DNA from: Macrostomum lignano
Lineage: Eukaryota
Assembly: GCA_002269645.1 (NCBI GenBank)
Contig: NIVC01000825.1
Coordinates: 248,001 to 312,000, forward strand
Length of the DNA: 64,000 nucleotides
Direction of reading: 5' to 3'
Shown one piece after another: positions 20,520 through 41,500 of the stretch. The position numbers and the translations under genes were made by a program. The number at the start of each line of letters is the position of its first letter. The stretch's first letter is position 1. Under the pieces are notes generated by a model that saw nothing but the letters and a program-made list of their open reading frames with translations, had not been told where the DNA came from and ran no database searches.

Positions 20520-23500
20520 ATGACAGCAAATGAAGATGCAGCTGCTCTTATCCCTGGTAAGTATATTCGTTTCACTTTGTTTGTTGCTAAAACTCATCAT
20601 TTTTATGTAACTATAATTTTTATTCATTATGCTCTAGGCAACAATGCTGCTAGCGACCAAGAGGCATCAGTTGGAGACAAATCTGTGCCATTCAGCTCCA
20701 AGGTACAGGCTGTCACCCACTATTTGAGGTAAGTGTGCATATTTGTGAGCATCAGGTGAACAATAGTTTAATAAATTTTATATTTTAAAAATCTGGTTTC
20801 AATTTTCAATGCTTTGATTCAATTTTTTTTTGAATGTAATAAACTATTTAAGGTGTTTTATATTAAGAAATTCAGAATATAAGCCACAATTTATTTGGCC
20901 ACCCGCAGCCTCCCAGACAATGTCAAGCGCCGTGTGCGCGCCCTTAAGAAACTTCAATTCGCCTCGCTAGAACAGGAGGCTGAATTCTTTCGCGAATTGC
21001 ACCAGCTCGAGGAGCGATTCGCCGGCAACTATCTCGCCCAGCTCGATCGGCGCAGGGAAATCGTCGCCGGCGACGTTGAGCCCACTGACGAGGACGCCGA
21101 CTGGTCTGAGGAGGCCGACAATGGCGGATTTGCCGCGCAGCTGGCTGAGATGCTCAAGCAGAAGGTTGGTTTGCATTTTATTGGACGCTACTGAAAGGTC
21201 GGGGGTTCGATTCCCGACCCACTCGGAGCAATTTGTGACCTTGAGCAAGACACAACTCTACATTACTTCAGTTCACTCAGCTGTAAAATGGGTGCCAGCA
21301 TTAGCTGGGGTAGTTGAGGGTGTGTGTGGCGACCCCCCATTCCTAGGACTGAACAGCCGTACGCAGCCTTTAGATGCGCCGCACTATAGCTGCGGCTGAG
21401 CTGTCGGTTGCACATTCGGCCCAATTAGGGCAGGCGCAATAAATTAATAATAATTATTACTAGATGTCAGTATACAAACTGTTAGACTTATTTTCGTCAG
21501 AATCACAGTAACTAAATTGAAAGCCCAGACCGAAATTTCCAAATCAGAAAGGGTGTAGAACGGAGGGTAGAAGTAATAGTAGCAGTAGTAGTACGAGCTG
21601 AGACAACTTTTTGCTGCAATTTCCTAGTGTTAGGCCTCAATTGCTCATAATTAAATACACCTTTTGTACATCCATACAAGCCCGATCAACCACCCTACGC
21701 AGGTGACCATCGAGGAGGTGGACGAATCTGGGGAGCGGAAATCCTCGGACGTTAAGGGCGTACCGGATTTCTGGCTAACAGCTATGAAGAATGTTGAGCT
21801 GCTGGCCGAAATGGTGCAGCCGCACGATGAGCCGGTTCTGAAGCAGCTCAGGGATATTCAAGTTCGACTGTTTAGCGGGGAGGAGGTGATTGACTAACTA
21901 GTATTGGCTACATTTCTCCCGGAGTCCTGCGCTTGTTCTTCACTGACTCACCTTTTAATCATTTCCTTACATACTCAGATGCTGGGCCAGCCTCCCAGAT
22001 CCTCAGTTGCTTAGCCAGCCTCCCAGATCCTCAGTTGCTGGGCCAGCCTCCCAGATCCTCAGTTGCTGGGCCAGCCTCCCAGATCCTCAGTTGCTGGGCC
22101 AGCCTCCCAGATCCTCAGTTGCTGGGCCAGCCTCCCAGATCCTCAGTTGTTGAGCCAGCCTCCCAGATCCTCAGTTGCTGGGCCAGCCTCCCAGATCCTC
22201 AGTTGCTGGGCCAGCCTCCCAGATCCTCAGTTGCTGGGCCAGCCTCCCAGATCCTCAGTTGCTGGGCCAGCCTCCCAGATCCTCAGTTGCTGGGCCAGCC
22301 TCCCAGATCCTCAGTTGCTGGGCCAGCCTCCCAGATCCTCAGTTGCTGGGCCAGCCTCCCAGATCCTCAGTTGTTGGGCCAGCCTCCCAGATCCTCAGTT
22401 GCTGGGCCAGCCTCCCAGATCCTCAGTTGCTGGGCCAGCCTCCCAGATCCTCAGTTGCTGGGCCAGCCTCCCAGATCCTCAGTTGTTGAGCCAGCCTCCC
22501 AGATCCTCAGTTGCTGGGCCAGCCTCCCAGATCCTCAGTTGCTGGGCCAGCCTCCCAGATCCTCAGTTGCTGGGCCAGCCTCCCAGATCCTCAGTTGCTG
22601 GGCCAGCCTCCCAGATCCTCAGTTGCTGGGCCAGCCTCCCAGTGTCAGTTGCTGGGCCAGCCTCCCTGATCTCCAGTTGCTGTGCGAGCCTCCCAGATCC
22701 TCAGTTGCTCGGCCAGCCTCCCAGATCCTCAGTTGCTGGGCCAGCCTCCCAGATCCTCAGTTGCTGGGCCAGCCTCCCAGTGTCAGTTGCTGGGCCAGCC
22801 TCCCTGATCTCCAGTTGCTGTGCGAGCCTCCCAGATCCTCAGTTGCTGGGCCAGCCTCCCAGATCCTCAGTTGCTGGGCCAGCCTCCCAGTGTCAGTTGC
22901 TGGGCCAGCCTCCCTGATCTCCAGTTGCTGTGCGAGCCTCCCAGATCCCCAGTTGCTGGGCCAGCCTCCCTGATCTCCAGTTGCTGTGCGAGCCTCCCAG
23001 ATCCCCAGTTGCTGGGCCAGCCTCCCTGATCTCCAGTTGCTGTGCGAGCCTCCCAGATCCCCAGTTGCTGGGCCAGCCTCCCTGATCTCCAGTTGCTGTG
23101 CGAGCCTCCCAGATCCCCAGTTGCTGGGCCAGCCTCCCTGATCTCCAGTTGCTGTGCGAGCCTCCCAGATCCTCAGTTGCTGGGCCAGCCTCCCAGTGTC
23201 AGTTGCTGGGCCAGCCTCCCTGATCTCCAGTTGCTGTGCGAGCCTCCCAGATCCCCAGTTGCTGGGCCAGCCTCCCAGATCCTCAGTTGCTGGGCCAGCC
23301 TCCCAGATCCTCAGTTGCTGGGCCAGCCTCCCAGATCCTCAGTTGCTGGGCCAGCCTCCCAGATCCTCAGTTGCTGGGCCAGCCTCCCAGATCCTCAGTT
23401 GCTGGGCCAGCCTCCCAGATCCTCAGTTGTTGGGCCAGCCTCCCAGATCCTCAGTTGCTGGGCCAGCCTCCCAGATCCTCAGTTGCTGGGCCAGCCTCCC

Positions 23501-38500: not shown

Positions 38501-41500
38501 CAGCCTCCCAGATCCTCAGTTGCTGGGCCAGCCTCCCAGATCCTCAGTTGCTGGGCCAGCCTCCCAGATCCTCAGTTGCTGGGCCAGCCTCCCAGATCCT
38601 CAGTTGCTGGGCCAGCCTCCCAGATCCTCAGTTGCTGGGCCAGCCTCCCAGATCCTCAGTTGCTGGGCCAGCCTCCCAGATCCTCAGTTGCTGGGCCAGC
38701 CTCCCAGATCCTCAGTTGCTGGGCCAGCCTCCCAGTGTCAGTTGCTGGGCCAGCCTCCCAGTGTCAGTTGCTGGGCCAGCCTCCCTGATCTCCAGTTGCT
38801 GTGCGAGCCTCCCAGATCCTCAGTTGCTGGGCCAGCCTCCCTGATCTCAGTTGCTGGCGAGCCTCCCAGATCAGTTGCTGGGCCAGCCTCCCTGATCTCC
38901 AGTTGCTGTGCGAGCCTCCCAGATCCCCAGTTGCTGGGCCAGCCTCCCTGATCTCCAGTTGCTGTGCGAGCCTCCCAGATCCCCAGTTGCTGGGCCAGCC
39001 TCCCTGATCTCCAGTTGCTGTGCGAGCCTCCCAGATCCCCAGTTGCTGGGCCAGCCTCCCTGATCTCCAGTTGCTGTGCGAGCCTCCCAGATCCCCAGTT
39101 GCTGGGCCAGCCTCCCTGATCTCCAGTTGCTGTGCGAGCCTCCCAGATCCTCAGTTGCTGGGCCAGCCTCCCAGATCCCCAGTTGCTGGGCCAGCCTCCC
39201 TGATCTCCAGTTGCTGTGCGAGCCTCCCAGATCCCCAGTTGCTGGGCCAGCCTCCCAGTGTCAGTTGCTGGGCCAGCCTCCCTGATCTCCAGTTGCTGTG
39301 CGAGGCTCCCAGATCCCCAGTTGCTGGGCCAGCCTCCCTGATCTCCAGTTGCTGTGCGAGCCTCCCAGATCCCCAGTTGCTGGGCCAGCCTCCCTGATCT
39401 CCAGTTGCTGTGCGAGCCTCCCAGATCCCCAGTTGCTGGGCCAGCCTCCCTGATCTCCAGTTGCTGTGCGAGCCTCCCAGATCCCCAGTTGCTGGGCCAG
39501 CCTCCCTGATCTCCAGTTGCTGTGCGAGCCTCCCAGATCCTCAGTTGCTGGGCCAGCCTCCCAGATCCCCAGTTGCTGGGCCAGCCTCCCAGATCCTCAG
39601 TTGCTGGGCCAGCCTCCCAGATCCCCAGTTGCTGGGCCAGCCTCCCAGATCCCCAGTTGCTGGGCCAGCCTCCCAGATCCTCAGTTGCTGGGCCAGCCTC
39701 CCAGATCCCCAGTTGCTGGGCCAGCCTCCCAGATCCCCAGTTGCTGGGCCAGCCTCCCAGATCCCCAGTTGCTGGGCCTCTGTTAGCAATATAAACGGGC
39801 TTTCATTTTAAGCTACTGAGTATTATTATTGTTGCAGAATGGATTCGAACTGACGTTTAAATTCGCGCCAAACGATTGGTTCACTAACGAGACTCTAACC
39901 AAGACCTACTATCTGCGCATGGGGCCGACCCGCGACCAGCCGTGGAGCTACGAGGGCCCGGAGATTATCCGCTGCAAAGGCTGCGACATCTACTGGCGCA
40001 AGGGCAAGAATGTCACGGTCAAGGTGGTGAAGAAAGTGCAGAAGCACAAGTCCGGCGGGCAGAAGCGAACAGTGACGAAGACTGTGGAAACCGACTCGTT
40101 CTTTAACTTCTTCAGCCCGCCTAGTCAATGTAAGCTTTCCTATTTATGTACGATAGTGTGTGTCTGTCTATCTATCTATCTATCTATCCATGTATCTATC
40201 TATCTATCTATCTATCTATCTATCTATCTATCTATCTATCTATCTATCTATCTATCTATCTATCTATCTATCTATCTATCTATCTATCTATCTATCTATC
40301 TATCTATCTATCTATCTATCTATCTGTCCATCTATCTATCTATCTATCTATCTATCTATCTATCTATCTATCTATCTATCTATCTATCTATCTATCTATC
40401 TATCTATCTATCTATCTGTCCATCTATCTATCTATCTATCTATCTATCTATCTATGTATCTATCTATCTATCTATCTATCTATCTATCTATCTATCTATC
40501 TATCTATCTATTTATCTATCTGTCCATCTATCTATCTATCTATCTATCTATCTATCTATCTATCTATCTATCTATCTATCTATCTATCTATCTATCTATC
40601 TATCTATCTATCTATATATATCTATCTATCTATCTGTCCATCTATCTATCTATCTATCTATCTATCTATCTATCTATCTATCTATCTATCTATCTATCTA
40701 TCTATCTATCTATCTATCTATCTATCTATCTATCTATCTGTCCATCTATCTGTCTATCTATCTGTCTATGTATGCCTGTCCGCTATCGCTTTCCTTTGTT
40801 GCCAATTTTCTGTATTACCCGTAAAAAGCAAACAGCTCAGTTGATAAAACATAAACACCTGCTTCCTTATCATTTTTCAGCTGTGGATGAGTTGGAGGAT
40901 GTAAGCCGTTGTATTCGAATGTATCTGCTGGTTATTTGATTGGCTCCACATCGGTTGTTTAAGTTTGCAACTTTAAAATATGAATCTTTTAGAACGACGA
41001 AGACGTTGAAAATATCCTGCAGTCCGATTTCGAAATCGGGCATTTCCTTCGCGACCGATTCGTGCCACGCGCTGTGCTGTACTTCACTGGCGACGCGCTT
41101 GAAGATGACGACGAGGATGAAGAAGATGTGAGTGCAGCCTCGAGTCAAGCGAGCCTCTCTCGTAGTTTTGCCATTTCCTGAGCTGCCTGTCTTTTGTATT
41201 AGTTACCATGGATCAGCTTTGCTGGGGCTATAGTTATATCTTTGATGACCTGGGTCATAGTTATCTCTGATGACTTGGGTCATAGTTGTATCTGTGATGA
41301 TTTGGGTCATAGTTATATCCATGATGATTTGTTTCGTAGTTATATTTCTCTGATGACTCTGATGATTTGGGTCATAATTGTATCTCTAATGATTTGGGTC
41401 ATAGTTAATTTCTCTGATGATTTAGTTCATAGTTATATCTCTCTTATGAATTGGGTCATAGGTATATCTCTGATGATTTGGGTCATAGTTATATTTCTAT

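Follow-up and report, generated by a model that had tools for sequence, protein, structure and literature searches.

How does an intron of almost 18 kb, nearly all of it a single tandem repeat, come to lie within a conserved protein-coding gene, and can the gene that carries it still be properly expressed? The question is raised by a NAP1L1-type histone chaperone gene of the flatworm Macrostomum lignano, located in the 64,000-nt stretch of genomic DNA analysed in this work (positions 248,001 to 312,000 of contig NIVC01000825.1, assembly GCA_002269645.1; hereafter the window), the fourth intron of which is filled by a 28-bp minisatellite. We consider it likely that this is a normal, selectively maintained gene in which a short intronic minisatellite expanded in place, that the array is passive, and that this copy of the gene is still spliced. 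The feature is best described, from the comparison of two copies of the locus, as a copy-specific expansion of a variable number tandem repeat (VNTR) rather than as a fixed gene architecture. A literature search returned nothing on Mlig001367 (the locus tag under which the second copy is annotated), on Macrostomum NAP1L1, or on intronic satellite DNA in Macrostomum.

The host gene, to judge from its sequence, is an intact member of the NAP1L1 type. Its product matches the Pfam NAP family PF00956 over the complete profile (positions 1-266 of 266; E = 2.2e-93; 312.8 bits, the curated threshold being 28.6) and the structure of human NAP1L1 (11bc_A) with E = 2.5e-98, in agreement with the initial annotation, which had named a NAP1 histone chaperone. 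With human NAP1L1 (PDB 11bc, 7un3) it shares the full-length NAP domain, the acidic C-terminal tail and the ECKQQ end; the flatworm protein terminates in ...DEDDEDDGEDGEGRGAGGANGPKQECKQQ, with a CaaX-type CKQQ, and aeckqq is the aligned end of the human chain. On the other hand, the sequence identity is about 50%, and the window protein is the flatworm orthologue, a predicted chaperone. In the gene model every intron is of the GT..AG type, all 18 splice sites are intact, and the 10-exon frame contains no internal stop. The model is fitted end to end, tiny exons included, from MSANEDAAALIPGNNAASD to ECKQQ, by an 86% identical transcript (L001), one of three (L001-L003, protein P0001) assembled from public RNA-seq runs SRR28338163-5; in its cDNA the equivalents of positions 21885 and 39838 are joined exactly, with no gap. 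We considered P0001 as a product of the same gene and rejected this possibility on the basis of the 86% identity and a synonymous divergence (dS) of 1.48, which indicate an orthologue or an older paralogue; it was used for the exon model and for the estimation of constraint, which yielded a ratio of nonsynonymous to synonymous divergence (dN/dS) of 0.058.

Intron 4 begins at the border GAGGAG/gtgatt (21885/21886) and ends at ttgttgcag/AATGGA (39837/39838). It accounts for 82.0% of the 21,901-bp span from ATG to stop and is ~13-16 times as long as the published mean intron of M. lignano (1.1-1.4 kb; PMC5730564), and the array of 17,805 bp makes up 99.18% of it. The initial annotation had thus captured the outline correctly, having described intact flanking exons in phase, a 17.95-kb intron that is ~99% repeat, unique flanks of ~90 and ~60 nt, and an intron occupying ~82% of the coding span (the measured lengths are given in Table 1). 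Tandem Repeats Finder reports a single array with the unit CTCAGTTGCTGGGCCAGCCTCCCAGATC, 93% matches and 2% indels; in the window we counted 572 instances of the 11-nt core CCTCCCAGATC, where 0.1 would be expected from shuffled sequences. Among the ~644 monomers we distinguish 32 variants, the main type (n = 332) forming runs that are interspersed with two-monomer (56-bp) blocks designated BC, EI and FM. The 5' 4 kb of the array contain a 1,806-bp super-repeat with 80% positional identity, and in this 5' domain a 600-bp block is duplicated exactly at the 1,806-bp lag; the longest exact repeat anywhere inside the array is 696 bp.

The origin of this array is illuminated by a second copy of the locus. 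A protein annotated in M. lignano (P0121; PAA79740.1, BOX15_Mlig001367g3) differs from the window protein only by an additional Glu in the acidic tail, and its locus, on contig NIVC01000618.1 of the annotated Mlig_3_7 assembly (L005 in Table 1; hereafter the sister copy), is collinear with window positions 7614-53513. Unique noncoding blocks of the two are 97.3-98.2% identical (in one example, 1,357 nt with 27 mismatches and 10 gap positions). As the differences are mostly substitutions, both copies are genuine, and a single locus that was assembled twice can be discounted. They may be alleles, duplicates stemming from the known genome duplication, or representatives of sibling lineages. The homologous intron of the sister copy has 414 bp (L005 11430-11843) and identical borders, and it contains the same 28-bp repeat, in the same phase at both array ends, in only 9.5 copies; the giant intron therefore has ~68-fold more repeats and is 43 times longer. 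The 3' flanks are distinguished by a single substitution (ttgcag in the window, ttacag in the sister copy). In the other eight introns the length difference never exceeds 468 bp, and the large differences are all found in introns that bear arrays. The shared intron, flanks and repeat, together with the presence of just 9.5 copies in the sister copy, point to the in-place expansion of a pre-existing minisatellite. Among the three loci searched, an 18-nt core of the 28-mer was found only at intron 4 of the window and in the sister copy, and not in L004, the locus of a 58% identical M. lignano paralogue (P0003), which has no intron at the equivalent of 21885/39838, its exons 4 and 5 being fused.

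These data suggest the following scenario. In the ancestral state, a short 28-bp minisatellite would have been situated mid-way in an intron of ~0.4 kb; in the window copy it would have grown in place to ~644 repeats, and we infer that slippage during replication and unequal exchange were the most likely causes of this growth, in the course of which blocks of several monomers, as large as ~1.8 kb, would also have been duplicated. The short array of the sister copy has B-like and C-type monomers at its 3' end, which argues that the dimer blocks were amplified from pre-existing variants. The array as a whole would be passive intronic DNA. Its features are those of an intronic VNTR: head-to-tail units in the 10-100-bp range, located wholly within an intron between unique flanks; a copy number that differs between homologous sites with identical borders (644.5 vs 9.5); and an internal variant structure with dimer blocks, a super-repeat and a duplicated block, as described above.

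The proposal that the gene is maintained by selection is based on the comparison of the coding sequences of the two copies, which differ by four third-position synonymous substitutions and one in-frame 3-nt (GAA) indel. One of the substitutions is in exon 4, immediately upstream of the giant intron (21873; T in the window, C in the sister copy), and two are in exon 5 (39891, with G in the window and A in the sister copy, and 40089). The synonymous divergence amounts to ~4/237, i.e. 1.7%, compared to the noncoding mismatch rate of 2.0%, and nonsynonymous changes number 0 in ~881 sites, where according to our own arithmetic ~17 would be expected under neutrality and ~8 if only the window copy had drifted. 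Both copies look selectively maintained, and this constraint argues against long-standing pseudogenisation, while a recent expansion or silencing is still compatible with it.

Can the transcript of the expanded copy be spliced correctly? The initial annotation had drawn attention to the many decoy acceptors that lie between the true splice sites, and the question is legitimate: intron 4 contains 1,761 CAG, 1,855 AG and 804 GT. The claim of three CAG trinucleotides per monomer holds for the consensus, and the predicted total of ~1900 decoys was too high by comparison with the CAG count, which is ~7% lower because variant monomers lose one CAG. GTRAG, the motif at most M. lignano donors (PMC8629364), occurs 52 times in the remaining 46 kb of the plus strand and 0 times in intron 4, so that presumably no internal pseudo-exon can be defined within the array. 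Recursive splicing was considered and rejected, as AGGT is likewise absent from the intron. The decoy tracts contain 2-6 T in 17 nt, compared to 6-10 T in 17 nt for eight of the nine true acceptors of the gene. We infer that the window copy is transcribed and that its splicing has been kept: the expansion has left intact the donor, both unique flanks (88 and 59 nt) with the U-rich region before the acceptor, and exon 5 (292 nt) with its strong donor, exon definition across exon 5 (gtaagc donor) should mark the true acceptor, and the CAGs of the array would be disadvantaged by lying behind C-rich, U-poor tracts. The gene is also a candidate for spliced-leader (SL) trans-splicing. A putative trans-splice acceptor that fits YTNCAG, the M. 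lignano trans-acceptor motif (PMC8629364), is found just upstream of the ATG (Table 1), and the annotated sister protein opens at this very point. The spliced leader of M. lignano has the sequence CGGTCTCTTACTGCGAAGACTCAATTTATTGCATG, and the transcripts L001 (nucleotides 1-15) and L002 (1-24) start with its exact 3' end (...TGCGAAGACTCAATTTATTGCATG); therefore, the gene of these transcripts is SL trans-spliced and their source species shares the M. lignano leader.

Several observations, concerning both the expression of the expanded copy and the array itself, weigh against this interpretation. Judged by the count of pyrimidines (10-13 of 17), some decoys equal the true C-rich acceptors at 20909 and 21703, and 57 CTCCAG sites in intron 4 fit YTNCAG, the motif reported for M. 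lignano trans-acceptors (PMC8629364). Correct splicing of the window copy thus appears plausible, with no guarantee. In the collection searched, a junction-spanning query of 158 aa had no matches outside the known M. lignano cluster, and it retrieved no transcript-derived fragment of the window copy. Furthermore, 2.3 kb just upstream of the gene's 5' end (17895-20221), comprising most of a right-hand long terminal repeat (LTR) and 1.5 kb of AT-rich DNA, are present in the window and absent from the sister copy, and owing to this difference in the upstream region or outron the relative expression of the two copies could differ. The decoys, the trans-acceptor matches and the altered upstream region would also be in line with the expanded copy being a redundant duplicate, silenced, poorly spliced or on the way to a pseudogene, its array tolerated under relaxed selection while the short-intron copy does the work. 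Near-identical copies of the gene indeed number at least two, the other one having a 414-bp intron and an annotation based on RNA (its gene model is derived from a genome-guided transcriptome of RNA-seq reads; PMC5730564). The suffix g3 of its locus tag suggests redundancy, as does the large-scale duplication of the DV1 genome, of which 180 Mb lie in blocks with an identity of at least 95% (PMC5730564). Nonetheless, we regard such a fate of the window copy as unlikely, given that its reading frame, its splice sites and its CaaX end are all intact, and that no nonsynonymous difference has appeared while the synonymous sites diverged like noncoding DNA.

As for the array, monomers of 27 and 26 bp, which result from single-base deletions in short runs, cluster in its interior (~26.4-30.8 kb). 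Such monomers may be genuine variants or errors left in unpolished long reads, and the detail of the interior and the exact length of the array are less certain than its edges. An extreme version of this concern is that the length of 17.8 kb is an assembly artefact, caused by over-extension of the array or by a mis-join, and that the real intron is shorter or the two groups of exons are not adjacent at all. The local abundance of monomers with 1-nt deletions, as seen where polishing fails, and the size of the array in the assembled near-identical locus (only 267 bp) would agree with this. However, the flanks are collinear with the sister copy in the same order and orientation and with the same repeat phase, which excludes a chimeric join of unrelated loci; the variant domains are ordered, and the array, with its longest exact repeat below 0.7 kb, has no multi-kb identical blocks typical of assembler loops. 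The ~2% substitutions between the loci also mean that the sister copy is no collapsed version of the window. An artefact is for these reasons very unlikely in our opinion, and we retain the view that a genuine minisatellite has grown within a maintained gene.

Could the repeat be something other than passive DNA? The initial annotation had envisaged a highly structured repeat RNA, a prediction that found no support. The minimum free energy of the repeat RNA is -116.3 kcal/mol per 280 nt, compared to a mean of -108 for dinucleotide shuffles (z = -1.60; 10 of 200 shuffles as good), and z is -0.76 for the BC region, -0.19 for one monomer and -0.69 for two. The stability, being close to that of the shuffles, therefore reflects the 64% GC and no selected fold, and the structured RNA was rejected as a candidate. 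A search of the window with Rfam gave no match, and no tRNA genes were found in it. A broader hypothesis, of the type put forward for the Drosophila Y introns or the human VNTR TRACT, would assign the repeat a role as a transcriptional delay or timer, as a protein-binding or structured RNA, or as a cis-regulatory element for copy-specific expression. It could draw on the orientation of the array, whose C-rich strand is the one that appears as RNA (GC skew -0.21); this orientation disfavours R-loops and is therefore the tolerable one. A CCUCCC core, which the repeat has in common with the 27-bp array nearby, would be another point in its favour. We find a function of this kind extremely improbable, because the sister copy manages with 9.5 repeats, the 58% identical paralogue is intronless at this site, and every other array of the locus varies between the copies, as neutral minisatellites would.

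The presumed passive nature of the array is easier to appreciate against the repeat content of the genome, in which simple and tandem repeats constitute 15% (PMC5730564). The share of tandem repeats is 19% in the window without the large array, 20% in the sister locus and 24.7% in L004, and three of the nine introns of the NAP gene are dominated by such repeats (Table 1). The L004 paralogue spreads its 375 codons over 20 kb (L004 10001-30059), and its introns contain at least seven different minisatellite arrays with units of 13-28 bp, one of which, a 13-bp array, takes up 97% of the intron at 16240-17619. Minisatellites with 13-30-bp units thus occupy 60-97% of several M. lignano introns. The window array stands out by its length: across the 129 kb of M. 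lignano DNA examined there are 25 arrays of 200 bp or more, and it is 4.5 times the length of the next in size. The giant array is a large but ordinary case of the array-filled introns that are frequent in this species. One of its neighbours may even be related to it: the 27-mer array downstream of the gene and the intronic 28-mer have a common 16-nt core CCTCCCAGATCCTCAG and give the impression of having diverged from one founding sequence, but there is no obvious similarity between the flanks of the two arrays.

Some further observations concern the remainder of the window. The large array is open in all three plus-strand frames, with open reading frames (ORFs) of up to 950 aa (21933-39811), because the main monomer lacks a plus-strand stop codon; on the minus strand of this region no ORF of at least 130 aa is listed. 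We considered the array as coding sequence and rejected this interpretation: a frame read on past the donor of exon 4 is closed by TAA at its fourth codon, the unit length of 28 is not divisible by three, and 9.5 units are present in the sister copy. The open frames are a trap for ORF-based gene callers and represent no gene. The 4.3 kb at 58914-63238 accommodate four different minisatellite arrays of 0.4-1.1 kb each (units of 31, 22, 23, 22 and 21 bp), which adjoin or lie within a WD40 (Prp19-like) gene with an exon at 57951-58445. A protein search with the ORF at 50455-50928, in the neighbouring gene, gave no match. An interspersed element of ~250-300 bp, resembling a short interspersed nuclear element (SINE) and carrying a tRNA-like GGTTCGATTCC box, is found in several copies in the window and, with 74-92% identity, also in L004; ARAGORN and Rfam made no call on it. 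A degenerate LTR retrotransposon occupies 6777-18660 on the minus strand, with an integrase domain (12388-12915), a weak gag match (16964-17539) and LTR-like direct repeats (~6777-7848 and 17593-18660) that are 93.7% identical over the 766 bp compared. It is shared with the sister locus at 90-93% identity, compared to 97-98% for the adjacent unique DNA.

Table 1. Features of the NAP1L1-type locus and its surroundings in the window, with the corresponding values in the sister copy (L005)
Feature	Position	Strand	Description in the window	Sister copy (L005)
NAP1L1-type gene	20520-42420	+	ATG to TGA, 10 exons, 1,125 nt, 374 aa, ends CKQQ	
Putative spliced-leader trans-splice acceptor	20482-20490	+	tttcag/cag, just upstream of ATG	
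Exons 1-3	20520-20556, 20638-20728, 20909-21164	+		
Exon 4, upstream of giant intron	21703-21885	+	ends ...LFSGEE, donor GAG/gtgatt	
Exon 5, downstream of giant intron	39838-40129	+	292 nt, begins NGFELTF..., donor AAT/gtaagc	
Exons 6-10	40881-40900, 40993-41127, 41834-41854, 41951-42007, 42388-42420	+		
Intron 1			81 bp	77 bp
Intron 2			180 bp	181 bp
Intron 3			538 bp	574 bp
Intron 4	21886-39837	+	17,952 bp, GT..AG, phase 0, GC 63.8%	414 bp
5' unique flank of intron 4	21886-21973	+	88 nt	1 substitution
28-bp minisatellite array	21974-39778	+	single array, 644.5 copies (Tandem Repeats Finder)	9.5 copies
3' unique flank of intron 4	39779-39837	+	59 nt; U-rich tract and true acceptor ttattattgttgcag	1 substitution
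Intron 5			751 bp	891 bp
Intron 6			92 bp	92 bp
Intron 7			706 bp	1,174 bp
Intron 8			96 bp	96 bp
Intron 9			380 bp	380 bp
(TCTA)n microsatellite, intron 5	40163-40773	+	153 copies, 81% of intron	188 copies
27-29-bp minisatellite, intron 7	41230-41653	+	~14 copies, ~60% of intron	26 copies
Related 27-bp array, downstream of gene	43305-47299	+	149 copies, unit CCTCCCAGATCCTCAGGTTAAGACTAA	91 copies
30-mer array, intron of next gene	50203-50446		8 copies, apparently ~86% of ~285-bp intron (50171-50455)	13 copies
SINE-like copy, in NAP intron 3	21190-21442	+		
SINE-like copy	47711-48005	-		
SINE-like copy, split by ~0.93-kb GC-rich insert	48657-48831 and 49758-49878	+		

What makes the locus worth attention is that two copies ~2% apart differ 43-fold in the size of one intron through minisatellite expansion, while the protein has stayed under purifying selection, which shows how fast intron size can change. 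We hope that its description will be useful to those who annotate and assemble Macrostomum genomes, in which arrays of this kind can fragment or collapse an assembly and cause gene models to be split. In a flatworm amenable to transgenesis, the pair of short- and long-array copies may also serve as a model for the choice of splice sites, and for SL trans-splicing in competition with decoys. A bolder claim, which we consider clearly unlikely, would be that in an animal with SL trans-splicing the copy with the long array reaches full expression and accurate splicing in spite of its ~1,760 CAGs, 57 of them trans-acceptor matches, and of the ~18 kb to be transcribed, with these sites exposed, before the true acceptor emerges. 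If true, it would imply that the acceptors of the repeat are actively masked, for instance by proteins that bind C-rich tracts, or that exon definition is strict. It would also supply a natural near-identical pair (414-bp vs 17,952-bp intron) in which the cost or effect of a repeat-filled intron can be measured, and a copy-specific delay or dosage effect would become possible.

How does this intron compare with known systems? No new kind of element or mechanism emerges from it. The initial annotation had likened it to the satellite-filled introns of Drosophila Y-linked fertility genes, and the general idea of this comparison holds loosely, as kl-3 and kl-5 are also protein-coding genes with introns composed mostly of tandem repeats that have to be transcribed through and spliced out. 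The introns of the Drosophila Y genes carry simple 5-7-bp satellites, lie on the heterochromatic Y chromosome, and belong to genes that are expressed in testis and rely on dedicated RNA-binding proteins and a programme of slow, stage-specific transcription. The analogy does not extend to the type of repeat, the chromosomal context and the size. The Drosophila type is defined by simple satellites in gene-poor heterochromatin, whereas the window array has a 28-bp unit and is collinear with a gene-dense contig, with neighbouring genes within ~5-10 kb and the next gene ~5 kb downstream. The Drosophila Y fertility-gene introns, described as megabase-sized (PMC6508621), represent a class of hundreds of kb to Mb, unlike the 17,952 bp observed here.

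A better match is provided by the VNTR called TRACT in intron 3 of human CACNA1C, which has a 30-bp unit and a length of 3-30+ kb (PMC13131567, bioRxiv 10.1101/311795) and is called human-specific in the preprint. TRACT differs from the flatworm array in that it sits in a very large intron, whereas the window array fills 99% of its intron, and the comparison made here involves two diverged copies of a locus, ~2% apart, rather than a population of alleles. On the other hand, both are minisatellites with units of about 30 bp in an intron of an ordinary, non-heterochromatic gene, both reach lengths of kb to tens of kb that vary strongly in copy number, both contain internal variants, and both have expanded in a lineage-specific manner. 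Large intronic VNTRs such as TRACT are the closest known kind to the array in the NAP1L1-type gene of M. lignano.

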